From: Isurus oxyrinchus
Lineage: Eukaryota
Assembly: GCA_026770705.1 (NCBI GenBank)
Contig: JANJGN010000052.1
Location: 3,906,001-3,970,000 of the forward strand
Length of the DNA: 64,000 bases
Reading direction: 5' to 3'
The notes under the pieces were generated by a model. It worked only from the letters and a program-made list of their open reading frames with translations. It made no database searches and had not been told where the DNA came from. A program made the position numbers and the translations under genes. Below, one piece after another: positions 1 to 48,885 of this stretch. How positions within the stretch are numbered: the first letter of the stretch is position 1; the number at the start of each line of letters is the position of its first letter.

Positions 1-597
1 GCATTTCCAGGTACCTTCCCTCAGGATAAGAACTTATTTCACATTTACAACGGGCACTGCCTATGTAAACTGTCACACTGCAGTTACATTCTCCCACCAG
101 TGGAGGGGTCTATCTAGAATGCAGGAAACTCCCTTTCAGATCCTCAGGATGTCCCCAAGGGCTTCAAAGGCAATGAATTGTATTTGATCGATGGAGAACT
201 GAGGGGTAAATCTACAATTCACTGTTCAGGAGGTTGCTCATCCAGTTCAGGGTCTTGTTGATCTGGAGTTTACCTTCCATCAACAAAGAATCGGAGCTGA
301 TACCGAGACTCCAGTGCAGCACTGAGAGAGGAGAGGGTACCCACACGTTTTTGTGTGTGAATGTGTGTGTTGGCTTGTGTGTGTGTATGTTTCTGCACAA
401 CAAGGATCTGTGTGTGCACGCACGCATGTGTGTTTGTGTGTGTGCGCACGTGTGTCTGTCTGTGCGTGTGTGTGTGTGTGAGTTAAGGTTGTGTGTCCTT
501 CTGCATGTGTGTCTGTTTGTGTGTGTGTGTGTGTGTGAGTGTGTGTGTGTATGTGTGTGTGTGTGTGTGAGTGATGTTGAAGTTTGCAGTAACTCAC

Positions 598-879
598 GTT
601 CCACAGTGATGGTTATGAACCCCTCCACTGCTCCATGTTCATTCTCTGCCACACACTGATAGTCTCCAGTGTCCCTGGATGTAACGTGAGGAATCACCAA
701 CCACAGCTCATTGTTGGAACTTGTTCTGTTCATTTGGACATTAAGATGTCGCCACGTCAGGTTAGAAGCTGGGAAGCTCTCGACAGAGCAGATTATCACT
801 GCAGAATTCCCCTCAATTATGTTGATCGATGAAGCGTTAATCATATCAAGAGAATTAATTGAGAGATTCTGTGGTGCAT
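598..879 (-). CDS. Siglec-like gene A: Ig domain 3 exon (C2/I-set stalk); gene continues beyond the left end
   Basis: ttttag|ATGCACC acceptor and GAAC|gtgagt donor; 282 nt, phase 1-1; encodes ..VIICSVESFPASNLTW..DTGDYQCVAENEHG.. Confidence 0.92.
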
Positions 880-1009
880 CTAAAAACAAATAAACATCAA
901 TTAACTTAAACTGACTGTGAAGCACTTTGAAATACACTGAGAATGTGAAAGGTTTGATATCAATGCAGGTTCTTTCACCACAAAGCCCGTAATCCAGGCA
1001 GACAAATCA

Positions 1010-1440
1010 GTTCAGTATTGAGGGAGTGCTGCAATGACAGAGGGTCAGTACTGAGGGAGTGCTGCACTGTCAGTGTGTCAGTACTGAGGGAGTGCTGTAG
1101 TGTCAGACGGTCAGTACTGAGGGAGTGCTGCATTGTCAGTGTGTCAGTACTGAGGGAATGCTGCACTGTCAGAGGGTCAGTACTGAGGGAGTGCTGCACT
1201 GTCAGTGGGTCAGTACTGAGGGAGTGCTGCACTGTCAGATGGTCAGTAAAGAGGGGGTGCTGCACTGTTTGACGGTCAGAACTGAGGGGGTGCTGCACTC
1301 TCAGAGGGTCAGTACTGAGGGAGTGCTGCACTGCGAAGATTCAGTACTGAGGGGGTGCTGCACTGTCGAAGGGTCAGTAGTGAGGGAATGCTGCAGTGTT
1401 GGAGAGTCAGTATTCAGGGACTGCTGCAGTGTCAGAGGTG
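1010..1440. repeat. 33-bp SINE-derived minisatellite (cagtactgagggagtgctgcactgtcagagggt)n
   Basis: Tandem units visible; 11-aa periodicity in the ORF track. Confidence 0.9.
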
Positions 1441-1557
1441 AATTTGTATCAATTAAAGACTATTGATTTGTTGCTAAACACAATGCAGTTGTGGGATCTT
1501 GCAGTGTACTATGTGGAGCTTTCTAGCTAATGTAGATGGAAGGGAGTCGGTACTTAC

Positions 1558-1854
1558 CTTGCACAGTTAGTACGAGGGTCCGCTCCGATGAAACAGATGG
1601 ATATCTCACTCTGCAGCTGAGAGTGTGTCCGTGGTGTTTGAGTGATGGGATCAGGGTCAGAACAGAAGTATAGGTCAGAGTGACACCATGCTGAGTTACA
1701 GTGTTTGAGACTGATCCAGGTACGTCAGTGGGAGTGTCCCTGGTTAAGACAGGTGCTGCTGTTCCATTGCACGTTGTGTTGAAGGTGCAGCTTACATCCA
1801 CACGCTTTCCTGCAATAATTTCAGCAGGGAATATCGTGGGTTTATCTGTGAAAT
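1558..1854 (-). CDS. Siglec-like gene A: C2-set domain 2 exon
   Basis: tgttag| acceptor, CAAG|gtaagt donor; 297 nt; SCTFNTTCNG (includes the Siglec interdomain Cys)..HHGHTLSCRV; the core Trp is Arg here (LTRDT). Confidence 0.9.
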
Positions 1855-2225
1855 CTAACAGACAGAGAATGGATCCTTTTAGAGAAATATAACGTGAAGC
1901 ATCAGTTCAAATAGAAATCACAGTCCCACAAGAGAAAGCACTTTTACAAGGATGATATCAGAACTGAGTTGTTTTAACTATCCTGATAGACTGTTAGACA
2001 CGATTAGAGAGATCGATGGGAGTAGAATACATTTAATCATTGATATTAAAGTGAGTATTAAAGGTTACGTTAGGACTGAACTGGAAGCTATCACCAGGTT
2101 ATTGAGAATCAGACAGTGTGTTATAATAAGCTGTGTTTTGTGTTAATATGTAAACGTCACAGTTTGTGTTGTTTCCCATTGAGTGTTGAATGTGAATTGT
2201 TGAGTAATTATAACACAGCACTTAC

Positions 2226-2591
2226 CAGAAACGTGAAGCTGGGTTACAGGATAGTAGCTATATCTATTCCTGCTGTCAAATTCTATTCTGAAATAATAAG
2301 GTCCTGCATCTTCCCGTCTGATGTTGTTTATAATCAGGGAACAGTCGCCATCTTTCAGGTCTCCAGACAGCCGGGTCCGATGGCGGAACCGTGGTAACTC
2401 ATGATTGTGATCCTTGGAGTGAAAGGCTATAGACGATCTTCCCCGTTCCTCATTATTAAACCAGACTCCACCTCGTTGTTGGTTTTCCAAATTTGAAGGA
2501 TAACTGTAATGACACGGAATCTGTACACACGAACCTTTCTGTGCTGTCATCTCTCGTGGAGTGTCACCTTTCCACTCTTGTGACCATCCAA
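2226..2591 (-). CDS. Siglec-like gene A: V-set sialic-acid-binding domain exon
   Basis: ccccag| and TCTG|gtaagt; 366 nt; GSCVQIPC, GDCSL (Siglec B-E intrasheet Cys pattern), DAGPYYFRIE with the essential Arg. Confidence 0.95.
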
Positions 2592-5722: not shown

Positions 5723-5762
5723 CTTGCAGAAGTGACAGGAGGAAGTAAGATTTCCCGATCAT
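5723..5762 (-). CDS. Siglec-like gene A: leader (signal peptide) coding part, MIGKSYFLLSLLQ(V)
   Basis: ATG at 5762, CAAG|gtaata donor, phase 1, joins the V exon in frame; exon acceptor ctttcag| at 5804; same peptide in gene B. Confidence 0.88.
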
Positions 5763-6194
5763 TGTCCACTCCCAGATATTTCCTCAGCTTCTAACTCTGA
5801 AGTTCTGAAAGAGAAAGGAGTTAATGAGACTTCACCTCTTGTCCGACAGCTCTTGAGAGATCAGAACTGCTTTTAGACAATATCTTCACAGACTAATTTG
5901 ATTCTCTGTGGGATGATAGGTGCTCTACAGAGAGTTACAAGGCTTTCAGAAAGAAAAACAATGAAGGTCTTGCATTTCTATAGCACCTTTCACCACCTTG
6001 GATGTCCCCAAGCTCATGTCCCTTGAGCTAGAAAGATGTTCTGTACAACAGACTTGAGCCTCACACCCAGATCTCAATAATCAGTAGAAATCTTTCAAAG
6101 GCATCGATCATTGGAATCTGTCTTTATAAAGTCACAACATCAACAAAGGACGGTGTTGGTGGTGGAAGTGAATTCCAATCGTTCCGCTACTTAC

Positions 6195-6340
6195 CCAGGA
6201 CCTGTCCGACTGCTCGCCTGGGGAGGAACTGCCCACACGCTCTGCTTGGGCTGAATGACCTCTTCCTGTGCTGATCCATCTGTGTATTAAATTAGAAAAG
6301 GCTGATGCGTCACTGTGAGCCAAAATGAGGAAGTTGGAAC
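6195..6340 (-). promoter_or_regulatory. Gene A putative promoter and non-coding first exon
   Basis: CCTGG|gtaagt donor after 6195; AT-rich TATA-like stretch ~6286-6296; PU.1/ETS-like AAAATGAGGAAGT at 6322-6334; conserved in gene B. Confidence 0.55.
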
Positions 6341-9345: not shown

Positions 9346-10482
9346 TATATATTCATTCTTCCATGGGAAGTGGGCATCACTGGCTAGGCCAGCATTTATG
9401 GCCCATCCTTAATTACCTTGAGAAGGTGGTGGTGAGCTGCCTTCCTGAACCTCTGCACTCCATGTGGTGTAGGTACACCCACAATGCTGTTAGAGAAGGA
9501 AGTCCAAGATTTTGACCCTAGTGGCAGTGAAGGAATGGCGATATATTTCAAAATCAGGATGATGTGTGGCTTGGAGGCGAACTTCCAGGTGGTGGTGTCT
9601 GGGCATTTCAATCCCTTGTGACAATAAATGTAATATTATAGAAAATGCAAAGGCTTCTTGTAATCTATCACAGAATAAACAAGTTGCAGAATTCAGAAAG
9701 CACTTTCTGAAATGTCAACAAAGTTCAGTGACGTCACATTTCTGCTAATTACTATTCGGCCATGTTGGCTGCTTGCAGTCAGGCAGTCCCTCGGTTGTGA
9801 TGTGTCCACACAGCAGTACTGGGATGCATCAGCATCAAAGGACATGCTTAGTTGTTGCCGTGCAATGCATTTATTGCGAGGCTGTTGCACACACGCCCTG
9901 TCGATGGACCCTCTGAATTACCATTCTGAATCGAGGCAGATCAACTTTCCTGCAACAACTTGCATTTATATGGCACACTTAATGTAACAAACTGTCCCAA
10001 ATCTCTTCAGGGGATTGTTACCTACATATAAATCCATCTCTGAGACACATAATGAGGTATTAGGGACAGGTGACAAAAAGCTGATTTCACAAAGCCAGTT
10101 AATNNNNNNNNNNNNNNNNNNNNNNNNNNNNNNNNNNNNNNNNNNNNNNNNNNNNNNNNNNNNNNNNNNNNNNNNNNNNNNNNNNNNNNNNNNNNNNNNN
10201 NNNNNNNNNNNNNNNNNNNNNNNNNNNNNNNNNNNNNNNNNNNNNNNNNNNNNNNNNNNNNNNNNNNNNNNNNNNNNNNNNNNACTGAATCTCTGTCCCC
10301 AATGACTCAGCATCAAGTCGTCACTGGGGAAACATTTCATTCCAAACCACACCAACCACAGACCCATTCAGTCCCTTCCTCCCTCTCTCCCCCTCTCCCC
10401 CAGTGGGTTGTCTCATGTTCCCAAGAATCTTCATCCCTGCCACCATCCACAAACCTCCTGACCCCCTCTCCCTTTTTCACGC

Positions 10483-10731
10483 TCAGTTTCTCTTGAATCT
10501 GATCTGTGCGTATTCCGTCTGCTCTTCCCTGTGGACAGACCCATCACCACTGGGCACCCTGAAGACTTGGGGATTGGTGTAGAGAAGGTCGTTGGGATTG
10601 TCGGGGTTCCCATGTCCAGCATCGCCTCCCACTGGACCTTCAGAGAGACCCCGGGGAGCTGGGGTCTCCCCCTCACTAGTTGTATCTCTGGTTGTGTTCC
10701 GGGGCTCAGTAATCAGCACGTTCTGTTTACC
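10483..10731 (-). pseudogene. Orphan Siglec terminal cytoplasmic exon (LLYTNP degenerate ITIM; TEYAQI ITSM-like)
   Basis: ctgtag| acceptor, 249 nt, open to stop; paralog of 53453-53701; no TM exon found upstream. Confidence 0.85.
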
Positions 10732-10874
10732 CTACAGAGAAACGGAAACAGAAGGCATCCTCACATCATTTACTGGCACTGATAGGGTTAAATTATTCTG
10801 CAGCCTCGTTAGTATCAGTCGTGGGTCAGTGGGTTTAACCCTCTCTCACATGTTTTATGAAAGAAAACACCTAT

Positions 10875-11155
10875 GGCAGTGCAGTGCTCCCTCAGTACTG
10901 ACCCTTCGATAGTGCAGCACTTCCTCAATGCTGACCATCCAACAGTGCAGCACTCCCTCAGTACTGACCCTCCGACAGTGCAGCGCTCCCTCAGTACTGA
11001 CCCTCCAACAGTGCAGCGCTCCCTCAGTACTGACCCTCCGACAGTACAGGTCTTCCTCAGTACTGACCCTCTGACAGTGCAGCACTCCCTCAGTACTGAC
11101 CCTCTGACAGTGCAGCACTCCCTCAGTACTGACCCTCTGTCAGTCTCGCACTCCC
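10875..11155. repeat. 33-bp SINE-derived minisatellite
   Basis: Tandem units. Confidence 0.9.
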
Positions 11156-11285
11156 TCGGTAAGGCTCTGGCGAGTGTCGGCTTGGATTCTGCACTCAGGT
11201 GCCTGGTTTGAGGCTCAATAACATGAATCTTGTAATCAGAGAGAGGATGAGAGAGAGAGAGAGAGATGAAGGGTCAGAGACAGAG

Positions 11286-12043
11286 CGTTATGAATCTATT
11301 AATGTATGTATTGTAATTGGAAATTGTCTTTTTAAACAGAGGTTTAGTCTGTGGGTGTGTGTGTGTGTGTTTTAATTGGATTAAAGCCAGCCGGTCTGGG
11401 GACTTTGATGTATAGTAGTTTTGAGATGTAAACAAAGAGGTAAAGAGGCATATTGCATTTTTAAAAGGAGGATTCAAAGCCTGGGAGTGAATTCTTAAAC
11501 CAATCAATGTTGATATTACTAATAAAATTGATACTATGAAACGGGATTTATAGTTAGAAGAGATGGAGTTCAAAGGTCCTGATGATACAATGAGAATTTA
11601 CATTCAAAGAGAAGCACTGGGTATAACTTGAGCAGTTTTGTGTGTGCAGAGCAGAGGCTTGTAACATCAAAGCAGCTGTAAGCCTGCACATGTCTGCAAT
11701 GGAACCAAAGTGAAAGGAACCTCATTTGGAATTTGTGAGGTGAAAATGCTTCGCTTGGAATCTGCTTAAAGTCTATGGGTTGTCTTAGAGGACGTTAGTT
11801 TGGGAATTTGTTAAAAAGTTATGATAGTACTAGTTTGTAGCGATGTGCATATGATTAACTTGTGAAAATTAATAAATGTCTCATGTAGTTTGATATAAAA
11901 CCATCTCAAGAACTGGTGGTCTTATTCCTGAATTTAGAGCTGCATCTCAAACATTCCACTGGGAAATATAGGTTATGACAGTTGTTTAAAGTTTCCCTCT
12001 GGGATTTTAAACAACAGCCTTTACCAGTTGCTGTGTCATAACA
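11286..12043 (+). mobile_element. Solo LTR-like element
   Basis: (T>C)GTTATGA..TCATAACA inverted termini; internal AATAAA; same family as 6852-7667. Confidence 0.7.
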
Positions 12044-12178
12044 GAGAGACAGCATGATATTGAACCATTGCTGACTCCACAGGTACAAATCAGTGGGTAA
12101 CTGGGCAGGGAATCTGTGACATGTGTTGTCTACACACTGAGATTGAAGCTTTGGAGTGAGTGTAAACAGTTCCTGTAC

Positions 12179-12260
12179 CTGGTGTTTCACAGAGAGTGGA
12201 CTGGGGGTCAATGCAATGTCTCTGGTCCCTGAAACTCTCTCCTCCATCGCTGTCTTTCTC
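12179..12260 (-). pseudogene. Orphan juxtamembrane cytoplasmic exon (RKTAMEERVSGTRDIALTPSPLSVKHQ)
   Basis: ttgcag| and CAG|gtacag; 82 nt; paralog of 52264-52345. Confidence 0.85.
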
Positions 12261-12394
12261 CTGCAATAACACAATATTACACTGTGGTTATCATATAGCA
12301 GAGAGTCAGTGCAGCACAGACACAGAGCCCACTGTAATCTTAGACCAACGACTGGGACTGTCTCTTTAAATCAGTTCTATACAAAGCACAGAAT

Positions 12395-12860
12395 CAAGAA
12401 GCTTGACACCATCCAGGACAAAGCAGCCCGATTGATCTACACCCCATCCCCCACATTAAACATTCACTCCCTCCACAACGAACACACAGTGGAAGCAGTG
12501 TGTGTACCATCTACAAGATGCACTGCAGCAACTCAGCAGGGCTCCTTCAACAGCACCTTCCAAACCCACGACCTCTACCATCTAGAAGGACAAGGGCAGC
12601 AGACACATGGGAACACCACCACCTGGAAGTTCCCCTCCAAGTCACTCACCATCCTGACTTGGAAATATATCATCGTTCCTTCACTGTCACTGGGTCAAAA
12701 TCCCGGAACTCCCTCCCTAACAGCACTGTGGGTGTACCTACACCACATGGACTGCAGCGGGTCAAGAAGGCTGATCACCACCACCTTCTCAAGTGCAATT
12801 AGGGATGGGCATTAATGCTGGCTTCACCAGTGACAGCCACATTCGATGTAAGAATTAAAA
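12395..12860 (+). mobile_element. LINE 3' fragment
   Basis: KKLDTIQDKAARLI..; same 3' end as the 55.5-55.96 kb copy. Confidence 0.8.
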
Positions 12861-13433
12861 ATCTCACAGCTCAATGTATTTATTGGGATCCTCCTGCACA
12901 CACGCCCTGTCGAAGGAGCCTTTGTGGTTCCATTGTTAATCAAAGCAGATCAGACTTACTGCAACTACTTGCATTTATATAGCACCTTTAATGTAGCAAA
13001 ATGTCCCAAGGCTCATCCGGGAATTGTTAGTCACATCTTCACCTGACTCTGAGGCACATGAGGAGATATAAGGGACAGGAGACCAACAGCTGCGTCAACA
13101 AAGTCAGTTATTAACGGGCATCTTAAAGGAGGAGCTGGAGATAGAGAATGAGTGACAGACACAGAAAGAAAGACAGAGAGAGGGAGAGAGAGAACAAGAG
13201 AGCGAGAGAGAGAGAGAGAGAGACAGAGAGAGACAGTGAATCTCTATCCCCAGTGGCTCAGCATCCAGTCCTCTCTGGAGAAGCATTTCATTCCAAACCA
13301 CACCAACCGCAGCCCAATCCCATCCCTTCCTCCCTCTCTCCCCCTCTCCCCCAGTGGGTTGTTTCCCGTTCCCAGGAATCTCAATCACTACCCCCACCCC
13401 CATACCTCCTCACTCCCTCTCCCCATTTTTCAT

Positions 13434-13682
13434 TCAGTTATGCTCGAACCTGATCTGTGCGTATTCCGTCTCCTGATCCCTGTGGACAGACCCATCATCA
13501 CTGGACATCCTCAATACTTGGGGATTGGCGTAGAGAAGGTCGTTGGGATTGTCGATGTGCCAATGTCCAGCATCGCCTCCCAATGCACCTTCAGAGAGAC
13601 CCCGGGGAGCTGGGGTCTCCCCCTTACTAGTTGTGTCTCTGGTTGTGTTCCGGGGCTCAGTAATCAGCACGTTCTGTTTACC
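13434..13682 (-). pseudogene. Second orphan Siglec terminal cytoplasmic exon (LLYANP; TEYAQI)
   Basis: ctgtag| acceptor, 249 nt, open; upstream lies minisatellite, then the gene B promoter on the opposite strand. Confidence 0.85.
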
Positions 13683-13824
13683 CTACAGAGAAATGGAAAC
13701 AGAAGACATCCTCACATCAATTACTGGCACTGATAGGGTTAAATTATTGTGCAGCCTCGTTAGTGTCAGTCGTGTCTCAGTGGGTTTAACCCTCTCTCTC
13801 ATGTCATCTGAAAGAAACCACCTA

Positions 13825-14400
13825 TGGCAGTGCAGTGCTCCCTCAGTACTGACCCCCCCGACTGTGCAGAACATCCTCAATAGTGACCCTCTGTCAGTCT
13901 CGCACTCCCTCTGTACAGTGCAGCACTTCCTTAGCACTGACCCTCTGACAGTGCAGCACTCCCTCGGAACTGACCCTCCATCAGTGCAGCGCTCACTCAG
14001 TACTGACCCTCCAACAGTGCAGCACTCCCTTAGCACTGACCCTCTGACAGTGCAGCACTCACTCAGTACTGACCCTCCATCAGTGCAGCACTCCCTTAGC
14101 CCTGACCCTCTGACAGTGCAGCACTCCCTCACTACTGACCCTCCAACAATGCAGCACTGCCTTAGCACTGACCCTCTGACAGTGCAGCACTCACTCAGTA
14201 CTGACCCTCCAACAGTGCAGCACTCCCTTAGCCCTGACCCTCTGACAGTGCAGCACTTCCTTAGCACTGACCCTCTGATGGTGCAGTACTCCCACATTAC
14301 TGACCCTCTGACAGTGCAGCACTCACTCAGTACTGACCCCTCCAACATTGCAGCATTCCCTCTGCACTGACCCTCTGACAGTGCAGCACTCCCTCAGTAA
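13825..14400. repeat. 33-bp SINE-derived minisatellite
   Basis: About 16 tandem units. Confidence 0.9.
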
Positions 14401-14619
14401 TGATACCACAGATTGTCGACATGGACCATATGGCCAGAGACCTGTATTGGGAACTCTTATCGCCTGAGTTTCAGCCTCCGAGGTGAGGGGAAGGGGTTTA
14501 ATCCCACGGAGCCATTGGAGAAGCTTCATGACTACAGCTGCCCAAATATGAGCTGACAGATCATCACATGGTAAACGTTTTGCTGAGAGCACAAAACATC
14601 CTCAATCTTCTCACTGATT

Positions 14620-14763
14620 ACCCACTTCCACATTTTGTCTCACAGTGACACATCAACCCTTTCTAATTAAATACACAGAGGGAGCAGCACAGGAAGAGGT
14701 CATTCTGCCCAAGCAGAGCGGGTGGGCAGTTCCTCCCCAGGCAAGCAGTCGGACAGGTCCTGG
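14620..14763 (+). promoter_or_regulatory. Gene B putative promoter and non-coding first exon
   Basis: Inverted homolog of 6195-6340; CACTTCC ETS site, TAATTAAATA, CCTGG|gtaagt donor at 14764. Confidence 0.55.
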
Positions 14764-15213
14764 GTAAGTAACGGAACGATTGGAATTCACTTCCACCACC
14801 AACACTGTCCTTTGTTGATGTTGTGACTTTATAAAGACAGATTCCAATGATTGATGCCTTTGAAAGATTTCTACTGATTATTGAGATCTGGGTGTGAGGC
14901 TCAAGTCTGTTGTACAGAACATCTTTCTAGCTCAAGGGATGAGGGAAGAGCAGAGACATGAGCTTTGGGACATCTTGAGGTGGTGCAAGGTGCTATAGAA
15001 ATGCAAACCCTTCATTGTTTTTCTTTGTTAAAGTCTTGTGACTCTCTGCAGAGCACCTATCATCCCACAGATAATCAAATTAGTCTGAGAAAACATTGCC
15101 TAAAAGCAGTTCTGATCTCTCGAGAGCTGTCGGACAATAGGTGAGGTCTCATTATCTCCTTTCTCTTTCATAGCTTGAGAGTCAGAAGTGGATGGAATAT
15201 CTGGCAGTGGACA

Positions 15214-15253
15214 ATGATCGGGAAATCTTACTTCCTCCTGTCACTTCTCCAAG
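15214..15253 (+). CDS. Siglec-like gene B: leader coding part, MIGKSYFLLSLLQ
   Basis: ATG at 15214, CAAG|gtaata donor, phase 1. Confidence 0.88.
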
Positions 15254-16500
15254 GTAATATCATCGTCAGCTCAGACAGATTTATGGCTAATAGTCTTTGT
15301 AAAAGATCATTCTTATTGAGCTGTGATTGGGAACCGATTCAGCAGTGAGCCAGTGTACAACCTCACACCAAGTCCCATTCACCCATCACCCCTGTGCTCA
15401 CTGATATACACTGACTCCATGTCTGACAGCAGAATTGGAGGAGAATAGAGATCTCAGAGGGTTGTAAGAACTGGAGGAGGTTACAGAGATAGGGAGGGGA
15501 GAGGGTGGATTGCGGGTAAGAAATCAATGATGAGAATTTGAAATTTGAGTCATTGCTGGACTGGGAGCCAATGTAGGTCAGTGAGTGACAGGGGAGCGAT
15601 CGGCTGAATAGAGAAACAGGGATAAAAACTGGGGAATGAGGTCTATCCTGATGCTAGGACTCGGATAACAATGCCCTGAAATTTTGTGTCATTTGCTGAT
15701 TTTAGTCAGAATTTCCCATGAAGACAACACAGCAGCTCCTAGAATAGACAGGCTGTTCAGTGTCACACTTCCTGTCCATTCTCACCATGCTAGATACTTC
15801 AATAAGGGAGCAAGATAACTGAAAGAGAGAAGGAAGGTAAAGCTGTCTGTGTGTAAAACTGTCAAATATTCTGAGTTATCATGAGTGTCTCTGACCTGCT
15901 GCAGAGTTTAAATTTCACAGAATCTGAGCACTTTGCAGCTCAGAGAGAGACCATTGACTCACTGCCTGAAAGGGCGGTGGAAGCAGATTCAACAGGAACT
16001 TTCAGAAGGGGAACTGGATAAATACTTGAAGGGGACATTTTGCAGGGCTGTGGAGGAGAGAGCAGAGGTTAGAGTGGGACTTATTGGACAGAACTTTCAA
16101 AGGCCCAGCACAGGCTCGATGGGCCAAATGGCTTCCTTCTCTTCCAGATCATTCTGCAATCTGATAAATTAAGCCCCACATCAATAACTCTTAAGGCTCC
16201 TGCTGCAGGGATGGATCTTTGAGAAGGACAGAGAATAAGAGGTTTCTGGTATCATTTTCATATTGTACTGAATCTTGCTGCCAGAATGTTTGGTCACCGC
16301 TGATCACCATGTTGTGTTTTTATAATGATATAAAGGCACCAGCCACTGATACGGAATTGGGTAAATACATTGTGGGTTCAGTTATTTTGAATAGGGACAT
16401 GAGAACAGATGTACAAGGATAGAAAGCTGGGAGACACCTGCAGCCAAACTGTGTGAGCTGTGTTCTGCTCACAGACAAAAGTGAAACTTGGACTGGATGG

Positions 16501-37770: not shown

Positions 37771-38149
37771 AGGGTTCTCAAAATTTCCAACTGTCAAGGA
37801 ACCCTGGGTTGGTGAGCGTGACCCCTGACCTCTCCTAGTGCAATTTAGTTAGGGTTTGGGGGTGGGACAAGGGTAAGGGCATTAGTAGCGTGATTCTCCC
37901 TCGTTATGCCGTGTGTTCCCCATTCTTAACTCAGTGTACTTTGTAAGTCTGTATAATCTCAGTGTCATCCTAATGTTAGAAGTTCATTTGTGACTTCAGT
38001 AAACTCAGTTTTTGTCTTGCACCAAAACCAGTTGTCTGCTGCACTTTGTGACAAGCCCCGAATAAGTCCAAGGTCTAGAACCCAGGGAGTGGGAGCGATT
38101 CAGACGGCTCAGAAGTCGCAGGTGAAGCTGACACACACCACCACACCCT

Positions 38150-38435
38150 ACAAGGGGCTGAATGGCCTCCTCCTGTTCCTGTGTAATGGGCTTCAGTGGC
38201 TGAATGGCCTCCTCCTGTTCCTGTATAACGGACATAAGTGGCAGAATGGCCTCCTCTTGTTCCTGTGTAACGGACATAAGTGGCAGAATGGCCTCCTCCT
38301 GTTTCTGTGTAACAGTCTTGAGGGGGCTGAATGGCCTCCTCCTGTTCCTGTGTAACAGGCTTGAGGGGGCTGAATGGCCTCCTCCTGTTCCTGTGTAACA
38401 GGCTCGACGGGCTGAATGGCCTCCTTCTGCTCTGT
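38150..38435 (+). repeat. ~39-bp tandem repeat derived from a CR1/HE1-type 3' tail (gctgaatggcctcctcctgttcctgtgtaac..)
   Basis: About 7 units. Confidence 0.85.
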
Positions 38436-38689
38436 AAAATTGTTGTGATACTGTAACTGCCTCTTTGGTTTCATTCAGCTGAATCTTCAGCTCTTCAGTC
38501 TCTTCCTTGTATCTCTTGCCTTCCTCCTGGAACATTGGACATGGTTGGGTCTTCCCTGCCAACTGTTTCTTCAGTTTGCTCAGAGCGGCACAGAATTCGC
38601 TTTCTTTCTCTTCAGGATTTTCCAGTGGAACCAACTCTGACCTGAGGGACACTTGCAGCCTGTGAGGATGCTTCAATTCTTCAAACTCA

Positions 38690-39370
38690 TTCCGAGATAC
38701 ACTCTCATATTCCCCCAGCAACTCAGCAACTCCTCCAGTGAAACATTTCAGAGCAGCTGAGCTTGGTTTTCTGGAACCAGTCTCGGCCCAGAAGACTAGG
38801 GCCCTCACCTGTCGCTATGATCACTGGAAGCTGGGCTGTCTGCTGCCTGTAGGACACAGGTACTGGGACCAGGTCCTTTCCCTGTATGGATTCTCCAGTG
38901 TGTGTCTTCAGCTGATCCATTGTTGGCTCTAAATTCAGCGTCTGGTTTCCTTCATTTAGCTGTTTAAATGTGGGCTCTTCCACCACTGTGTCTGAGGCTC
39001 CCATATCTGCCCCATTACTAGTGGCTGCCCATTCACTTGGGTTGTGATGGTTATAGGTTCAGTTTTTACCACTGTGACATTGGACAGGGAATAGACATCG
39101 GTATCAGCAGCTTCAGGCTCTGTGATATTATTCACTTCCATCATGTTGGTGCACTGTCTGATGGGCTGTCTCGATTTCACCCTGCATTGCTTTATTTCCC
39201 GCCCCTTTCTTGTGGCAGTGATGGCATTCTGCCCCCTTGAACCTGCAGGTGTCCAGTACGTGCTCAATGCCCCCCACATCGAGAACAGGCCAACTTCGGA
39301 GTTGCTGCTGAAATACTCCCACGAAGCCTTTTAGTTTCTGGAGCGGCAGAGACTGTCTCTCGCTTGGCGG

Positions 39371-39403
<33 letters not shown>

Positions 39404-39803
39404 GTTTGAGCCTCACGCCCGGTGGTTGGTTCCTGTCCCAGCTGAGGACTGGTGCCATGTTGTACATCCTGTAAATCCCGCCAGTCTCTCCCAGCACTTT
39501 CCATGCCTGGCGCTATTTCCATGGTGCGCTTCAAATCGATGTCGGCTTCTGCGAGTAAACGGCTCTGAATGGCGTTGGGGTGAACGACACAAACCAATCG
39601 GCCCCGCAACATGTCATTGAGTGTGTCTCCGAGGTCCCAGTGCTCAGTCACCTGCTTCCACTTCACTGTATAGGTTGCGATGGACTCTCCCTGGGCCCTT
39701 ACTCTGGAGTTAAACTTAAACCTTTTCATTATTACCCACGGCTTCAGCTGAAAATACATCTTCATGAGGTCGACTAATTGGTGAAAAGATTTAGAATTGG
39801 GTG
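38690..39803 (-). mobile_element. Degenerate Gypsy/Ty3 gag-protease fragment
   Basis: RFKFNSRVRAQGESIA..LNDMLRGRLVC (gag); CSRCGGH and CHHCHKKG zinc knuckles; VNGQPLVM/DMGAS and GEGPSLLGRDW (aspartic protease); frameshifted. Confidence 0.88.
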
Positions 39804-40092
39804 TAATACACGTCACTGTCTTCAGCTCTGAGACTGTCAATCCTCACCAAACAATTCTTCCCTTCCAAGTCGCCGATTATTTTAGCACGTCCCACGAATG
39901 TGGCCATCGCATAATTGGGATCTTTGGTGTATGTGATGGTATATTTCCATCTATACCAATATTTATACCAAGCTCCGTGCAGTGCTGTGTAAGAGTGGGA
40001 AGGCAGGTCAAAGCTACACGGAATAACCACACAAGAGCTGCTGATAGCCCTCCGAGGTAGCGCCTTCATAGACCATCCCTCTGACGTCACTC
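39804..40092 (-). pseudogene. Gene D: divergent MAG/Siglec-like V-set exon truncated at DSDVYY
   Basis: tttcag| acceptor; W..SSCVVIPCSF..HGAWY..FVGRAKIIGDLEGKNC..DSDVYY, then gag sequence and a stop at 39791-39793. Confidence 0.85.
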
Positions 40093-40124
40093 CTGAAAGG
40101 CAACAAGGGAGGGGACTGAACATC

Positions 40125-40600
40125 AAAAAGCAGAATATTACTTCAATGGAGAGAGTCTACAGAATGCGGTACAGAGGGATCTGGGTGTCCTTGTACATGA
40201 ATCACAGAAAGTCAGCATTCAGGAACACCACGGAATGAGGAAGGCAAGTGGAATGTTGGCCTTTATTGCAAAGGGGTGGAGTATAAAAGGAGGGAAGTCT
40301 TGCTACAACTGTACAGGGCGTTGGTGAGATTGTATCAGGAGCAGTGTGTACAGTTCTGGTCTCCTTACTTAGGGAGGGATAGACTCTGCATTGGAGGCAG
40401 TTCAGAGGAGGTTCACTGGGCTGATTCCTGGGATGAAGGGGGTTTGTCTTATGAGGAAATGTTGAGCAGGTTGGGCCCTGTATCCATTGGAGTTTAGAAG
40501 AATGAGAGGTGATCTTATTGAAACATATAAGATTCTGAGGTGGTGGGGGGTTTGACAGGGTGGATGCTGAGGGGATGTTACCCCTTGTGGGGGAATCCTG
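40125..40600 (+). mobile_element. CR1-clade LINE fragment in the gene D intron
   Basis: EYKRREVLLQLYRALVR..CVQFWSPY. Confidence 0.85.
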
Positions 40601-41224: not shown

Positions 41225-43335
41225 CACAATCTCTATCACACTCTTCTGCTCTATCTCTCTCTCTCACACACACACATTCTCTCTCTAACACTCACAATCT
41301 CTCTCTATCACACTCTTCTGCTCTATCTCTCTCTCTCACACACAGACACGTTCTCTCTCTAACACTCACAATCTCTCTCTATCACACTCTTCTGCTCTAT
41401 CTCTCTCTCTCTCTCACACACACATTCTCGCTCTTATACTCACAAAATTTTTCTCTATCACACTCTTCTGCTCTATCTCTCTCTCTCTCTCACACACACA
41501 TTCTCTCTCTAACACTCACAATCTCTCTCTATCGCACTCTTCTGCTCTATCTCTCTCTCTCTCACACACACACATTCTCTCTCTAACAATCACAATCTCT
41601 CTCTATCACACTCTTCTGCTCTATCTCTCTCACACACACACACAATCTCTCTCTAACACTCACAATCTCTCTCTCTATCACACTCTTCTGCTCTATCTCT
41701 CTCACACACACACATTCTCTCTCTAACACTCACAATCTCTCTCTCTATCACACTCTTCTGCTCTATCTCTCTATCACACACACACCTTCTCTCTCTAACA
41801 CTCACAATCTCTCTCTATCACACTCTTCTGCTCTATCTCTCTCTCTCACACACACACATTCTCTCTCTAACACTCACAATCTCTCTCTATCACACTCTTC
41901 TGCTCTATCTCTCTCTCTCACACACACACACATTCTCTCTCTAACACTCACAATCTCTCTCTATCACACTCTTCTGCTCTATCTCTCTCTCTCACACACA
42001 CACATTCTCTCTCTAACACTCACAATCTCTCTCTATCACACTCTTCTGCTCTATCTCTCTCTCTCACACACACACACATTCTCTCTCTAACACTCACAAT
42101 CTCTCTCTATCACACTCTTCTGCTCTATCTCTCTCTCTCACACACAGACACGTTCTCTCTCTAACACTCACAATCTCTCTCTATCACACTCTTCTGCTCT
42201 ATCTCTCTCACTCTCACACACATTCTCTCTGTCAGCACTCACAATCTCTCTCTATCGCACTCTTCTGCTCTATCTCTCTCTCTCTCTCACACACACATTC
42301 TCGCTCTTATACTCACAAAATTTTTCTCTATCACACTCTTCTGCTCTATCTCTCTCTCTCTCTCACACACACATTCTCTCTCTAACACTCACAATCTCTC
42401 TCTATCGCACTCTTCTGCTCTATCTCTCTCTCTCTCTCTCACACACACATTCTCTCTCTAACAATCACAATCTCTCTCTATCACACTCTTCTGCTCTATC
42501 TCTCTCTCTCACACACACATTCTCTCTCTAACACTCACAATCTCTCTCTCTATCACACTCTTCTGCTCTATCTCTCTCACACACACACACATTCTCTCTC
42601 TAACACTCACAATCTCTCTCTCTATCACACTCTTCTGCTCTATCTCTCTCACACACACACACATTCTCTCTCTAACACTCACAATCTCTCTCTATCGCAC
42701 TCTTCTGCTCTATCTCTCTCACACACACACACATTCTCTCTCTCACACTCACAATCTCTCTCTCTATCACACTCTTCTGCTCTATCTCTCTCTCACACAC
42801 ACACACATTCTCTCTCTAACACTCACAATCTCTCTCTATCGCACTCTTCTGCTCTATCTCTCTCACACACACACACATTCTCTCTCTCACACTCACAATC
42901 TCTCTCTCTATCACACTCTTCTGCTCTATCTCTCTCTCACACACACACACATTCTCTCTCTAACACTCACAATCTCTCTCTATCGCACTCTTCTGCTCTA
43001 TCTCTCTCTCTATCACACACACACCTTCTCTCTCTAACACTCACAATCTCTCTCTATCACACTCTTCTGCTCTATCTCTCTCTCTCTCACACACACATTC
43101 TCTCTCTAACACTCACAATCTCTCTCTATCACACTCTTCTGCTCTATCTCTCTCTCACACACACACATTCTCTCTCTAACACTCACAATCTCTCTCTATC
43201 ACACTCTTCTGCTCTATCTCTCTCTCTCACACACACACACATTCTCTCTCTAAAACTCACAATCTCTCTCTATCACACTCTTCTGCTCTATCTCTCTCTC
43301 TCACACACACACACATTCTCTCTCTCTCAAACATT
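41225..43335. repeat. ~60-bp CT/CA-rich satellite (ctctaacactcacaatctctctctatcacactcttctgctctatctctc..cacacatt)n
   Basis: More than 30 units; followed by a related CT/CA array and N-gaps. Confidence 0.92.
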
Positions 43336-44394
43336 TACCATCTCTCTCTATCTTTCTCTTCTGCTGTCTCCTTCTTTCGCACTCTCATGCACTCTCTCCC
43401 TCACACACACAGAATCTCCCTCACACACACACCCTCCCTCACACACACACGCACTCTCTCTGATACGCACAATCTCTCCCTCACACACACACACACTCTC
43501 TCTCACACACAGAATCTCTCTCACACACACACACTCTCCCTCACACACACATCCTCCCTCACACACGCACACACTCTCTCTGATACGCACAATCTCTCCC
43601 TCACACACACATACTCTCCCTCACACACACACACTCTCTCCCTCACACACAGAATCTCTCTCACACACACACACTCTCCCTCACACACACATCCTCCCTC
43701 ACACACACACACACTCTCTCTGATACGCACAATCTCTCCCTCACACACACAGAATCTCTCTCACACACGCACACTCTCCCTCANNNNNNNNNNNNNNNNN
43801 NNNNNNNNNNNNNNNNNNNNNNNNNNNNNNNNNNNNNNNNNNNNNNNNNNNNNNNNNNNNNNNNNNNNNNNNNNNNNNNNNNNNNNNNNNNNNNNNNNNN
43901 NNNNNNNNNNNNNNNNNNNNNNNNNNNNNNNNNNNNNNNNNNNNNNNNNNNNNNNNNNNNNNNNNNNNNNNNNNNNNNNNNNNNNNNNNNNNNNNNNNNN
44001 NNNNNNNNNNNNNNNNNNNNNNNNNNNNNNNNNNNNNNNNNNNNNNNNNNNNNNNNNNNNNNNNNNNNNNNNNNNNNNNNNNNNNNNNNNNNNNNNACAC
44101 ACTCTCTCCCNNNNNNNNNNNNNNNNNNNNNNNNNNNNNNNNNNNNNNNNNNNNNNNNNNNNNNNNNNNNNNNNNNNNNNNNNNNNNNNNNNNNNNNNNN
44201 NNNNNNNNNNNNNNNNNNNNNNNNNNNNNNNNNNNNNNNNGTACACACTCTTTCTAATTCTTTTTCTCTCTCACAGACTCTCTCTGTCTCTCTCGCTCTC
44301 TCTCTCTCTCACACACACTCTCTCTAATACGGAAGGTTGTGGTTTTAAGACGTGCTCATGATTTCTGCTCAAAACCCAGGCAGATTCTCCCCAG

Positions 44395-44790
44395 TGAGGG
44401 AGTACTGAGGGTGTGCTGCACTGTCAGAGGGTCAGTACTGAGGGAGTGCTGCACTGTCAGAGGGTCAGTACTGAGGTAGTGCTGCGCTGTCAGAGGGTCA
44501 GTAGTGAGGGAGTGCTGCACTGTCAGAGGGTCAGTACTGAGGGAGTGCTGCACTGTCAGAGGGTCAGTACTGAGGGAGTGCTGCACTGTCAGAGGGTCAG
44601 TACTGAGGTAGTGCTGCACTGTCAGAGGGTCAGTACTGAGGGAGTGCTGCACTGTCAGAGGGTCAGTAGTGAGGGAGTGCTGCACTGTCAGAGGGTCAGT
44701 ACTGAGGGAGTGCTGCACTGTCAGAGGGTCAGTACTGAGGGAGTGCTGCACTGTCAGAGGGTCAGTACTGAGGGAGTGCTGCACTGTCAG
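44395..44790. repeat. 33-bp minisatellite, very homogeneous
   Basis: About 12 units. Confidence 0.9.
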
Positions 44791-44902
44791 AACTGTCGTA
44801 ATTCAGATGATGTTTGAAATTAGCAACATGCCTCGTGTAAAATTCTATATCATCAGCTCAATATAAATAGATTAGTCCTGTACGTTTCACTTCACTGCAA
44901 AT

Positions 44903-46748
44903 TGTTCATGGTTTCATTTCCTTGTTAACCAGGCTCATGTGATGACTATTTTTAAATAATGTTTGTTATTTGGAACAAGGGGCCATGCCTGAACAGATAA
45001 CTGTCGGATCAAGCAGCTGGGATTTTTCTTGAACCTGGCTTCATTCAGATGTTTGCTGCTGGACATGAGATCATTAATGTGTGAATGTAGAATCGGAGTC
45101 ACCTCAGTGAACAGCAGCATTGGTTGAACAGCCTGATCTGCAATAAGAACTGCTGAACACAATGTCCGTTCAGAACAGCTCGGTCCCCGATCAGAGAAAC
45201 AGCCTCAGACAGAACCAACTGACGCTGGAATCCATACAATTCATCAACGTGTTGGGAGTTAGTTTGATGTCGGAGTTGGAGTGTTCCTGGGAAGGAGGGA
45301 ACCCGTCAGGATGAACAGCTCGATGTACGACAAGGAAAGGATGAGCTAAGAGGGGTTGGTCACGGACAGACGGAGCGTGTGAAGACTCAACAAGCTAATG
45401 GCAGGTGAAGAGCTGGAAAGGTGTCTTTTCAACACAAGGTTTAGACACAGAACTCGATGTTTGATCAGGTATTTCAAACCAGAGAAACTCTTTACAGGGT
45501 GAATGGACCTTGTCAATAATCCTTCCAGCCAACCTCGCCTGGAGATTAGTCCAATATTAGACACTAAACCGAGACCCCCGTCTGCCCTCTCGGGCGGGTG
45601 TGAAAGATCCCACAGCCACTATTTGGAGGAAGAGCAGGGGGGAGATCTCACACGCAGACACACACACACACACACACACATTTTCTCTTGTTCATTCTTT
45701 TAAACACACACACTCCCTCTCAAATACACACACCCTCTCTCGCACACTCCTTCTCTCAAACACATACACCCTCTCTCTCAAACACACACACACACACGCT
45801 CTCACGCACACGCTCTCTCACATACACGCTCTCTCTTTCACACACACACTATCTAACACCCACAGATTCTCTCTCTTTCTTTCTCTCTCACACATAAGCT
45901 CTCTCTCTAACACAGACATTCCCTTTCTCTCACACACACTCTCTCTCTCACACAATTCAGCTACCTCACTCTCTCATGCGTACACACTCTACCTCTCTTT
46001 TGCTCTCTCACACATTTTCTCTTTCTCTCTATCCTTCTCTCTCGCACACATACGCACTGTCACTCTCTCACACACACATTGTCTCTCTTTCTCACACACG
46101 CACTCACTCTCTCTCTCTCTCCAAGACAGCAGGTTGGGGTTTTCAAACCGTCTCAAGGTTTCAGCTCAAAACACAGATGGACTCTCCCCAGTGAGGGAGT
46201 GCTGAGGGAGTGCTGCACTGTTGGAGGGTCAATATTGAGGGAGTGCTGCACTGTCAGAGGGTGAGTACTGAGGGAGTGCTGCACTGTCAGGAGGTCAGTA
46301 CTGAGGGAAACCCTGCTCTATCAAAGGGTCAGTACTGAGGCAGTGCTGAACTGTCAGAGGGTCAGTACTTAGGGAGTGCTGCACTGTCAGAGTGTCAGTA
46401 CTGAGGGAGTGCTGCACTGTTGGAGGGTTAGCACTGAGGGAGTGCTGCACTTCCAGAGGGTCAATACTGAAGGAGTGCTGCACTCTCAAAGCGTCAATGC
46501 TGAGGGAGTGCTGCACTGTCAGAGGGTGGACACTGAGGGAATGCTGCTCTGTCAGACCTGCCATATTTCAGATGATGTTTAAAATTAGCAACATGCCTCA
46601 TGTATAATTATATATCATCAACTCAAATTAAATAGATTATTCCTGTACATTTCACTTTACTGTAAATTGTTTGCAGTTTCATCTCCTTAGAAGCCAGGTT
46701 TGTGTGATCACTATTTTTAAATAACGTTAATAATAAAGATGCGACAAT
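44903..46748 (+). repeat. Segmental duplication arm; inverted copy at 61488-64000
   Basis: Identical ORF-track peptides on opposite strands (44935..45162 minus equals 63741..63968 plus). Confidence 0.92.
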
Positions 46749-46762
46749 CCACATGCACACAT

Positions 46763-46798
<36 letters not shown>

Positions 46799-47501
46799 AT
46801 GTGTAGGCACATACATGCACATTTACACACAGTCATACACATGCAAAAACCTACACAGAAACATACACACACTCAACTCACACACACACACTCACACGTG
46901 CACACACATACACATACACATGTACACACATTCATTTATGCACAGAAATATACACAAAGACACACGCACATTTGCGCAAACACATACACACATGCACACA
47001 CAGACACATGCATGCATACTCACACAAACATACTCACATATGTAGAAACACAAACACATACACATAAACACGCGTGAGGTCCCTCTTCTCTCTCAGGGCT
47101 GCACTGGAGTCTCGGTGTCAGCTCCGATTCTGTGTTGAAGGAAGGTAAACTCCAGATCAGCAAGACCCTGAATTGGATGAGCAACCTCCTGAACAGAGAA
47201 TTGTAGATTTACCCCTCAGTGCTCCATCAATCAAATACAATTCATTCCCGTAAATCCCTTGGCAAAATCCTGAGGATGTGAAAGTTTCTTTCATTCTAGG
47301 TGAACAGCACATCTACTGGTGGGAGAATGTAACTCCAGTTTGACTGTTTACATAGGCAGTGCCCATTATAAATTTGACAGTGGAAGTTATATGGAGGGAA
47401 GGTATCTGGAAATGTATACAGACATCAGATACAGAGAGATGATGCATGGAGTCTTGCTGTGCACTATGCTTGCTCACATTAAAATCTTTATTTATTTTTA
47501 G

Positions 47502-47783
47502 ACGCACCACGGAATCTCTTAATTACTTCTCTGGATATGATTAACGTTTCATCGATCAATATAATTGAGGGGAATTCTGCAGTGATAATCTGCTCTGTCG
47601 AGAGCTTCCCAGCTTCTAACCTGACGTGGCAACATCTTAATGTCCAAATGAACAGATCAAGTTCCAACAATGAGCTGTGGTTGGTGATTCCTCACGTTAC
47701 ATCCAGGGACACTGGAGACTATCAGTGTGTGGCAGAGAATGAACATGGAGCAGTGGAGGGATTCATAACCATCACTGTGGAAT
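47502..47783 (+). CDS. Tail C: Ig3 repeat exon 1
   Basis: ttttag| and GAAT|gtgagt; 282 nt. Confidence 0.9.

Positions 47784-48844: not shown

Positions 48845-48885
<41 letters not shown>

Follow-up and report, generated by a model that had tools for sequence, protein, structure and literature searches.

Genes A and B, which stand head to head in the 64-kb window (the whole stretch of Isurus oxyrinchus DNA analyzed), are probably mirror-image Siglec-type paralogs of a large shark gene cluster that arose by inverted duplication, rather than parts of a DNA-flipping switch. The ~46-kb segment probably represents the space between the bodies of these two mirror-image genes. Gene A is encoded on the minus and gene B on the plus strand, with start codons 9.45 kb apart, and the segment contains two divergent heads and is bounded by inverted homology, as described in the initial annotation.

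Gene A, gene B and tail C

Gene A extends beyond the left window edge after its first Ig3 exon, and its own tail is located outside the window. Its features are:

1-597, minus strand: intron after the first Ig3 exon (conserved block ~1-340, TG/CA tract ~340-597), left arm of the inverted homology; matches 46853-47414, 48096-48449, 49093-49537 and 49990-50272 at 80-88%
598-879, minus strand: Ig3 (I-set/Ig_3) stalk exon, 282 nt, phase 1-1 (Ig_3, 8.9e-13)
880-1557, minus strand: C2-to-Ig3 intron, with a 33-bp satellite at 1012-1438
1558-1854, minus strand: C2-set exon, 297 nt, 3 differences from the gene B C2 exon (99.0%)
2226-2591, minus strand: V-set exon of Siglec type with the YYFRIEF arginine, 366 nt (V-set, 8e-13; Ig_CD22, 7e-10)
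5723-5762, minus strand: leader exon, MIGKSYFLLSLLQ, with GT donor; N-terminus common to great white shark P0152 and others

Gene B comprises:

15214-15253, plus strand: leader exon, its ATG head to head with that of gene A at a distance of 9452 bp
19146-19511, plus strand: V-set exon 1, 366 nt, intact
21242-21607, plus strand: V-set exon 2, 366 nt, intact, closest counterpart of the gene A V exon (87.7%)
22336-22632, plus strand: C2-set exon, within a block 98-100% identical to gene A, flanking intron included
22956-23303, plus strand: broken Ig3 exon (exon part 22956-23139, 5' part missing, frameshift) and start of the Ig3-intron CA tract
24222-24361, plus strand: last coding exon, transmembrane (TM) segment with arginine (ILHVILILGIRAVIFLVAVV...), 13-residue tail and stop; great white shark P0223 and P0222 have this C-terminus at 93.5% identity
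24628-24968, plus strand: 3' flank, with homology to the corresponding flanks of tail C and an orphan tail; hexamers (AATAAA or ATTAAA) at 24746, 24774 and 24810

With a TM(Arg) exon, a stop and a family-type 3' flank of its own, gene B is a complete activating-type gene. The Arg-TM exon is found in frame ~1.1 kb beyond the broken Ig3 exon, after which the first 140-165 bp of the CA tract are retained before homology to the Ig3 unit stops. Great white shark P0223 and P0222 display the same V-V-C2-TM(Arg) layout, including the TM exon matched at 93.5%. Gene B had been described as a head to be turned toward another tail; this view is not sustained, as its own Arg-bearing TM exon ends the gene, like in the great white shark relatives, and head B is neither free nor awaiting a tail.

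The third element, tail C, is located further downstream on the plus strand:

46750-47501, plus strand: truncated first Ig3-intron unit (CA tract, conserved block, acceptor), right arm of the inverted homology
47502-50678, plus strand: four tandem Ig3 exons (47502-47783, 48538-48818, 49624-49905, 50397-50678), identified by domain search and exon comparison
51495-51591, plus strand: TM exon, RDSSKWTVGLFTAGIMLSVFLAGIFIFICVR, span without charged residue; 97% identity to great white shark P0178
52264-52345, plus strand: cytoplasmic exon 1, RKTTMEERVSGTSDVALSPSPLSVKHQ; same exon in P0167, P0187 and P0197
53453-53701, plus strand: last exon with ITIM LLYANI and ITSM-like TEYAQI, then stop; 90% identity to basking shark P0167

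Tail C is an intact inhibitory back half without a head of its own, composed of four Ig3 exons, a TM and two cytoplasmic exons; great white shark P0187 and basking shark P0167 are likewise Ig3-TM-ITIM models that lack a head. Splice sites and frame of its TM and cytoplasmic exons are intact and the tail matches those of P0167, P0178 and P0181, with a frameshift by 1 missing nt in the second Ig3 exon (48538-48818). As noted earlier, tail C starts abruptly inside a CA tract: from 46750 on, this tract is in register with the inter-Ig3 introns of tail C, and left of 46749 unrelated sequence is found, an inverted copy of 61488-64000. This edge is a putative non-homologous breakpoint and argues against a homologous flip, which would not make such an edge.

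Other parts of the window include two orphan minus-strand inhibitory tail fragments located between heads A and B, whose exons follow the order seen in the tandem tail of P0197 from great white shark (87% and 74-76%), and two inverted repeats, X and X', located on either side of tail C:

9628-13682, minus strand: orphan inhibitory tail without same-strand head (3' flank 9628-9772, cyt2 10486-10731, cyt1 ~12155-12280, second cyt2 13437-13682, 33-bp satellites)
39803-40129, minus strand: V-set pseudo-exon of a different subfamily, cut by a retroelement; matches great white shark P0259 in the V domain at 86%
44903-46748, plus strand: repeat X, rich in transposons and satellites, terminating precisely at the start of the tail C CA tract; inverted copy of 61488-64000 (87-98.5%, longest exact match 265 bp)
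61488-64000, minus strand: repeat X', inverted copy of repeat X, adjoining a TG tract (61210-61323) across a gap (61324-61486)

Inverted homology and a proposed duplication of the whole gene

The first 897 bp of the window, containing the first Ig3 stalk exon of gene A and the intron that follows, correspond in reverse complement to a tandem array of four 1.05-kb units (46750-50686), with ~80-88% identity in the intron and 96-98.6% in the exon. Self-BLAST bore out the inverted Ig3-intron homology previously assigned to positions 1-590 and the tail C side, with matches of 2-562 to 47414-46853 (79.6%), 1-439 to 49537-49093 (83.6%), 4-358 to 48449-48096 (85.5%) and 39-319 to 50272-49990 (87.7%), and exon-bearing parts (490-897, 524-897, 536-897 and 592-894) align with the four units at 91-96%. 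All of these matches are inverted and far above chance (E < 1e-20). The Ig3 exons, described before as near-identical, share 96.1-98.6% identity between gene A (598-879) and the four tail C exons by exact exon comparison, and the longest exact match between gene A and tail C spans 152 bp. Since all Ig exons are phase 1-1, the product of a crossover between inverted units would be an in-frame fusion of head A and tail C; the geometry proposed in the initial annotation is therefore correct.

Homology between genes A and B is arranged in collinear inverted blocks (6349-4961, 2813-2026 and 1968-1526 in A; 14609-16046, 18936-21807 and 22222-22664 in B) and runs on through the Ig3 remnant and CA tract of gene B (22712-22783 to 947-875; 22956-23261 to 750-458). 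The block around C2, flanking intron included, is 99% identical, compared with 84-90% elsewhere; 5 mismatches were counted over 400 bp around C2 and 50 over 500 bp around V (p = 6e-9 by Fisher's test), an unevenness that may reflect gene conversion. Non-coding identity is similar for heads (87.7%, upstream blocks) and tails (80-88%, A intron compared with tail C introns), which fits a single whole-gene duplication.

Together, these data suggest a duplication that would have spanned the whole gene, so that gene B and tail C once formed one gene mirroring gene A. A later non-homologous event in the CA tract of the first Ig3 intron of gene B could then have placed ~23.5 kb between B and tail C, comprising the Arg-TM exon, a 3' end, transposons and satellites, and could thereby have turned B into an activating partner and stranded tail C. 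In gene B, the opening 116-146 bp of a CA tract of the Ig3-intron type are preserved, and tail C sets in 21-71 bp after the beginning of a tract of this kind; judged from these sequences, tail C would most simply be the stranded far half of the gene B ancestor. Mirror-image duplication of a gene with a tandem-exon stalk would yield inverted Ig3-intron homology as an expected by-product. Such homology could serve as a substrate for gene conversion and, perhaps, for an infrequent inversion in the germline, but is not a dedicated invertible element.

Several observations fit this scenario less well. The split-intron alignments in the low-complexity CA sequence overlap by 50-125 bp instead of abutting cleanly, and sequence may be hidden in the gap at 43784-44240. 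Neither the orphan minus-strand tails near the gene B promoter nor the inverted repeats X/X' around tail C are explained by it, and tail C is largely intact, as would be expected of a tail still in use or maintained by gene conversion rather than of one abandoned long ago.

Possible alternative tail use, inversion or assembly artifact

In one alternative, gene B would still employ tail C as a distal alternative 3' end, with its C2 exon spliced past the Arg-TM exon to the first Ig3 exon ~24 kb downstream. We consider this unlikely, albeit compatible with the duplication model, and a single promoter would then give rise to both an activating and an inhibitory receptor. Upstream of tail C, no head other than that of gene B is encoded on the same strand, every exon is phase 1-1, and tail C retains intact TM and cytoplasmic exons and three of four intact Ig3 exons. 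Moreover, the Mustelus asterias model P0004 combines a double-V head with an Ig3 exon and a LLYANINF-type tail. However, gene B has a stop and polyadenylation hexamers of its own, B-type models of great white shark end at the Arg-TM exon, and similar tails are annotated as headless, not head-joined, in great white and basking shark.

A germline inversion by homologous recombination between the gene A Ig3 array and tail C, either a past fixed flip or one still polymorphic, appears quite improbable. The assembled state would then be one of two, the other supplying head A with the inhibitory end of tail C, namely an intact TM and ITIM tail. Inverted units of ~1 kb, 46 kb apart, are present, and an exon identity of 96-98.6% implies exchange between the arms. 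Exact matches between the arms, on the other hand, do not exceed 152 bp, a short length for homologous crossover to proceed efficiently in mammals, and a homologous flip gives seamless junctions, leaving the tail C edge at 46750 and the truncated CA tract of gene B unexplained.

An assembly artifact (a wrong join at 46749/46750, a wrong unit count or a wrong relative orientation of three contigs) is very unlikely. Five N gaps interrupt the 64 kb, all within satellites or microsatellites, head A, head B and tail C are located on three separate contigs, CA tracts and tandem 1-kb units are difficult to assemble, and a sequencing error could explain the 1-nt deletion in the second Ig3 exon of tail C. 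The relevant gaps are:

10104-10283: assembly gap, non-coding, inside a direct 3-kb duplication; no exon affected, frame not at issue
43784-44240: two assembly gaps (43784-44096 and 44111-44240) with a 14-base island between, inside a CT/CA satellite

The 46750 junction and the flip boundaries are nevertheless internal to contigs and away from gaps. The sequences on either side of the first gap (9863-10101; 10286-11157) have collinear counterparts at 12872-13110 and 13237-14130, with a GA repeat of ~126 bp occupying the place of the gap in this second copy, and both additionally align, inverted and in matching order, to the tail C 3' end; two independent paralogous copies hence support the order and orientation of the sequence across this gap. 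Satellite strand polarity is equal on both sides of the second pair of gaps, making continuity there plausible, and the junction of repeat X and CA tract recurs as a mirror image at 61.2-61.5 kb.

A programmed or somatic inversion re-pairing ligand-binding heads with signaling tails in leukocytes, a true shufflon analog of the kind raised speculatively in the initial annotation, can practically be dismissed: the locus offers only its geometry, in a host that generally has RAG-based recombination, but the arms are diverged paralogous whole gene units without discrete short crossover sites, RAG-type heptamer-nonamer signals were absent at or near the edges of the homology (the 64-kb window contains a single weak match, 0.75 being expected), the 11 non-receptor ORFs scanned contained reverse-transcriptase fragments only and no recombinase or transposase domain, and such a mechanism is not known for any vertebrate innate receptor family.

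Comparison with known systems

The shufflon comparison is apt in that inversion between inverted repeats would swap the C-terminal part of a surface protein, as in pilV of plasmid R64 (Rci). Shufflons depend on a dedicated tyrosine recombinase acting at short (~19-bp) specific crossover sites and flip at high frequency. In contrast, the ORFs scanned in the shark locus include no recombinase, discrete sites are lacking, and the repeats are whole diverged gene units.

The closest precedent is the human/primate pair SIGLEC11/SIGLEC16, arranged head to head ~9 kb apart, similar to the 9.45 kb between the start codons of A and B, with V and C2 exons homogenized by gene conversion (PMC5701461). Genes A and B follow this pattern, with a C2 block of 99% identity over a background of 84-90%, and share with the primate pair one partner with a charged TM residue and no signaling motif, next to ITIM-bearing tails in the family. 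They differ in belonging to an independent expansion to dozens of genes in the shark lineage, in a stalk of many tandem near-identical Ig3 exons, in the two V exons of gene B and a gene A tail located outside the window, and in an intact inhibitory tail detached downstream of the activating gene B.

The paired receptors of the KIR, LILR and CEACAM families form multigene Ig-receptor clusters under birth-and-death evolution, in which tail replacement turns inhibitory members into activating ones. Hybrid genes and orphan fragments are further features of these clusters in mammals (see also PMC2832619, PMC5112662). The shark cluster resembles these systems, shaped by non-allelic homologous recombination and gene conversion, in its orphan fragments and proposed tail replacement, whereas exchange at the shark locus would proceed through CA tracts of introns and through tandem stalk exons.

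Automatically annotated elasmobranch Siglec-like proteins, which are not encoded in the window and whose orthology is uncertain among many paralogs, are built from an exon set shared with the window, their exons being 87-99% identical to those found here. These include great white shark XP_041037231, a V-V-C2-TM(Arg) protein, and two headless models, XP_041037176 of great white shark (four Ig3 exons, TM and ITIM) and the 'ICAM5-like' P0167 of basking shark (Ig3-TM-ITIM).

Two facing Siglec-like genes and a headless inhibitory tail

Gene A on the minus strand (head A) and gene B on the plus strand (head B) are two Siglec-like genes arranged head to head, with start codons at 5762 and 15214, 9452 bp apart. 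Gene A extends leftward beyond the window, so that its tail lies outside it. Further right on the plus strand, four Ig3 exons, a TM exon and two cytoplasmic exons (cyt1 and cyt2) form tail C, which starts at 46750.

Exons of gene A, gene B and tail C
5723-5762, minus, gene A leader, MIGKSYFLLSLLQ
2226-2591, minus, gene A V exon
1558-1854, minus, gene A C2 exon
598-879, minus, gene A Ig3 exon
15214-15253, plus, gene B leader
19146-19511 and 21242-21607, plus, gene B V exons 1 and 2, 366 nt each, intact
22336-22632, plus, gene B C2 exon
22956-23139, plus, gene B damaged Ig3 exon, 5' part absent, frameshift
24222-24361, plus, gene B last exon, in phase, D-SGGEILHVILILGIRAVIFLVAVVITITGVCVWERQTVKGSRQTV-stop
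51495-51591, plus, tail C TM exon, without charged residue
52264-52345, plus, tail C cyt1
53453-53701, plus, tail C last exon, LLYANI (ITIM) and TEYAQI

Database comparison was carried out exon by exon. V exons of both genes match Pfam V-set (down to 2e-13) and Ig_CD22 (down to 7e-10), and all three display the FR(I/T)(E/D)F motif with the conserved Siglec/CD22-type ligand-binding arginine. C2 exons match C2-set_2 and stalk exons Ig_3/I-set, and tail C combines a TM exon with the ITIM LLYANI and the ITIM-like TEYAQI, as expected of a Siglec tail. The closest database proteins are NCBI models called Siglec-10, -12, -13, CD33-like or MAG-like from great white shark, basking shark and other elasmobranchs, none of which has its coding sequence within the window; conserved exons are 93-99% identical to lamniform proteins. 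The window holds part of a large shark Siglec-type receptor cluster, in which sialic-acid binding is putative. Automatic annotation has already predicted these shark proteins, and a literature search found no paper on Siglec clusters of sharks.

Gene B contains an Arg in its TM segment, followed by a 13-residue tail and a stop. Its 3' flank carries polyadenylation hexamers and shares homology with the corresponding flanks of tail C and an orphan tail located between the two heads. The V-V-C2-TM(Arg) layout is exactly that of two great white shark proteins, P0223 and P0222, whose last exon is 93.5% identical. By this ending and the shared layout, gene B is a self-contained gene of putative activating type, and not a free head of the kind that, in the initial annotation, a flip would turn toward A's tail. 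The two symmetric 366-nt V-set exons of gene B share one leader and are 80% alike; both are present in P0223 and P0222, and other shark models reach up to five V domains.

In tail C, the three exons following the Ig3 array have canonical splice sites and an unbroken frame, and the exon chain is common to shark proteins P0167, P0178, P0181 and P0187. Ig3 exon 2 (48538-48818) lacks one base near its 5' end (ACGCACC-CAGAAT), shifting the frame unless the exon is skipped, which may reflect decay or an error in sequencing. Between gene B and tail C, the plus strand showed no leader, V or C2 exon, and the ITIM end of tail C is intact but headless. Tail C may be out of use, may serve gene B as an alternative end far downstream, or may be transcribed from a start of its own. 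The sole other V-like piece is a V-set exon on the minus strand (39803-40129), cut by a retroelement. It is of a different Siglec subfamily, matches great white shark P0259 at 86% and breaks off after DSDVYY; the neighboring ORFs (38008-39843) gave no Pfam match and were taken for putative gag-like retroelement sequence. Great white shark and basking shark likewise have headless Ig3-TM-ITIM models (P0187 and P0167, respectively), which means that tails are often detached or else often wrongly annotated as such. No counterpart of the first exon of P0187, which encodes its N-terminus, was found in the window.

Inverted homology and probable history of the A/B pair

The stalk of gene A is mirrored in tail C. 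Self-BLAST confirmed the inverted Ig3/intron homology described in the initial annotation: 1-897 is the reverse complement of four ~1.05-kb tandem units (46750-50686), with 80-88% identity in intronic and 91-96% in exon-bearing parts. Near-identity of the Ig3 exons likewise holds, A's exon being 96.1-98.6% identical to the four tail-C exons at exact exon borders. Tail C also starts as abruptly within a CA tract as had been stated, from 46750 and in register with the inter-Ig3 introns; the sequence before it, ending at 46749, duplicates 61488-64000 in inverted orientation. In the two arms, exons (about 96-99%) are more alike than introns, with few synonymous differences, indicating that the arms exchange sequence.

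Inverted homology of the heads runs from upstream blocks (6349-4961 versus 14609-16046, 87.7%) via V and C2 into the Ig3 remnant and CA tract of gene B. Identity is uneven along this path, with 395/400 around C2 (including 100 bp of intron) versus 450/500 around V (p = 6e-9). The V exons themselves (2226-2591 versus 21242-21607) are 87.7% identical compared with 96% in the intron behind, and differ by 23 non-synonymous and 11 synonymous codon changes, a pattern suggestive of patchwork conversion within the binding domain or of diversifying selection on it. The second V domain of gene B shares 87-88% amino-acid identity with great white shark proteins versus about 81% with that of A. By contrast, C2 is 99% identical between the two genes, from which it follows that the duplication is old and that C2 was homogenised later. 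Judged from these alignments, the uneven identity is probably a signature of gene conversion together with binding-domain diversification. SIGLEC11 and SIGLEC16, which lie head to head about 9 kb apart, show a pattern of conversion and binding-domain diversification (PMC5701461). A and B resemble this pair in being adjacent and head to head within a few kb, in their near-identical ectodomain exons and in their uneven identity. With respect to the pairing of a charged TM with an ITIM, gene B has the charged TM and short tail, whereas A's tail lies outside the window and tail C is headless.

The simplest history would make gene B and tail C the two parts of one split gene. One inverted duplication would have copied a whole gene, B and tail C once being a single gene that mirrored A. 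A non-homologous event in the Ig3-intron CA tract of that gene would then have set about 23.5 kb between them, bringing in the Arg-TM exon, a 3' end, LINE fragments, satellites and the dead V exon, and thereby creating an activating partner and stranding inhibitory tail C. Non-coding identity is alike for heads (87.7% upstream) and tails (A's intron versus tail-C introns, 80-88%) and thus fits a single inverted duplication of the whole gene. The Ig3 remnant of gene B is followed by 140-165 bp of intron-type CA tract and then by unrelated sequence; aligned to three introns, 116-146 bp of this correspond to the start of an Ig3-intron CA tract, and tail C begins 21-71 bp into a tract of that kind. 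As these CA alignments lie in low-complexity sequence and overlap by 50-125 bp, the split-intron history is consistent with the data, rather than proven. The orphan minus-strand tail could be given B as its inverted head, but this simple model was rejected, since an Arg-TM exon and 3' flank follow B where the model predicts TM and cyt1. At 23638-23696, 3' of the broken Ig3 exon of gene B, 60 bp of the conserved Ig3-intron block stand in reverse orientation; this piece was considered as an inversion footprint and set aside as too short and isolated.

The locus appears to be a shark counterpart of head-to-head paired Siglec genes plus a stranded inhibitory tail. If so, the known paired-Siglec design, kept alike by gene conversion, would be found once more, in a lineage separated from mammals by about 450 million years. 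Tail replacement would have made the activating partner, with the former inhibitory tail left over, and tandem stalk exons with CA-rich introns would act as breakpoints for remodelling.

A possible but unlikely inversion between the mirrored arms

The geometric argument of the initial annotation is right: with every Ig exon in phase 1-1, a crossover between the inverted units would fuse head A and tail C without a break in frame. Inversion of the segment in the germline, as a rare event or as a polymorphism, is unlikely, although the sequence exchange implied by the high exon identity of the arms favors it; a homologous flip leaves seamless junctions, however, and the abrupt edges are unexplained by a flip alone. 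In mammalian systems, NAHR-prone inverted duplications contain perfect-identity tracts of several hundred bp. Exact matches here extend to 152 bp between A's unit and tail C and to 265 bp between X (44903-46748) and X' (61488-64000), two inverted repeats that flank tail C, are 87-98.5% identical and each adjoin a CA/TG tract, all of which falls short of such tracts. By this comparison, X and X' would be a better substrate than the Ig3 units for inverting tail C.

Also unlikely is a wider scheme in which recurrent germline inversions or insertions in stalk-intron CA tracts re-pair heads with activating, inhibitory or null tails, and both orientations of the 46-kb (or the X/X'-bracketed tail-C) segment still segregate, so that some individuals would have an ITIM tail on head A and others would not. 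A shufflon-like flip of the ~46-kb segment, or the somatic flip raised as a speculation in the initial annotation, is unsupported: no recombinase turned up in the ORFs scanned, discrete sites and RSS at the arms are lacking, and the longest exact A-C match is 152 bp. Pfam scanning covered 20 translated stretches, of which nine were Siglec exon ORFs; the other 11 gave only reverse-transcriptase fragments. Short crossover sites were absent from the segment borders, the arms consisting of ~1-kb paralogous exon-intron units with 80-98% identity, and an RSS-type scan of the 64 kb returned one weak site versus 0.75 expected, located away from the arms. Nothing supports a programmed or somatic inversion. 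The locus would be remarkable only given a demonstrated orientation polymorphism or somatic flip, and is otherwise of modest interest.

Orphan exons, assembly gaps and satellites

An orphan inhibitory tail (9628-13682, minus strand: cyt2, cyt1, cyt2, 3' flank) lies between the two heads, with same-strand TM exon and head missing. Great white shark P0197 has a double tail in tandem with matching exon order, and both orphan cyt2 copies read LLY(T/A)NP at the ITIM position.

Exons of the orphan tail
10486-10731, minus, orphan cyt2
about 12155-12280, minus, orphan cyt1
13437-13682, minus, orphan cyt2, second copy

A gap at 10104-10283, touching no exon, falls between the contigs of head A and head B. 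On either side of it, 9863-10101 and 10286-11157 line up with 12872-13110 and 13237-14130, a direct paralogous copy that has a ~126 bp GA repeat in place of the gap. Sequence around the gap also matches the end of tail C, inverted and with its order kept (9628-9772 with 53882-53735; 10463-10842 with 53721-53342). Order and orientation across this gap are therefore supported. Two gaps between the contigs of head B and tail C (43784-44096 and 44111-44240) sit in CT/CA satellite of equal polarity on either side, which is consistent with the assembled orientation. The satellite array reaching the gap at 43784 (41230-43783) spans 2.5 kb and has a 74-bp CT/CA-rich unit. Within X', the gap at 62479-62611 corresponds to ~45 bp in the other repeat copy.

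Cytoplasmic-exon remnants of a third tail type (GRGHSAQAERVGSS..GEQSDRSW; compare great white shark P0259) lie immediately upstream of each leader, at 6159-6272 (minus) and 14671-14763 (plus), and the duplicated unit therefore began within the tail of the preceding gene. A 33-bp satellite with the consensus TCAGTACTGAGGGAGTGCTGCACTGTCAGAGGG was found in both orientations.

Copies of the 33-bp satellite
1012-1438
10877-11161
13907-14403
25094-25579
44401-44791
46198-46556
52560-53148
61680-61973

This satellite resides within the C2-Ig3 intron of gene A and in the cyt1-cyt2 introns of every tail copy.
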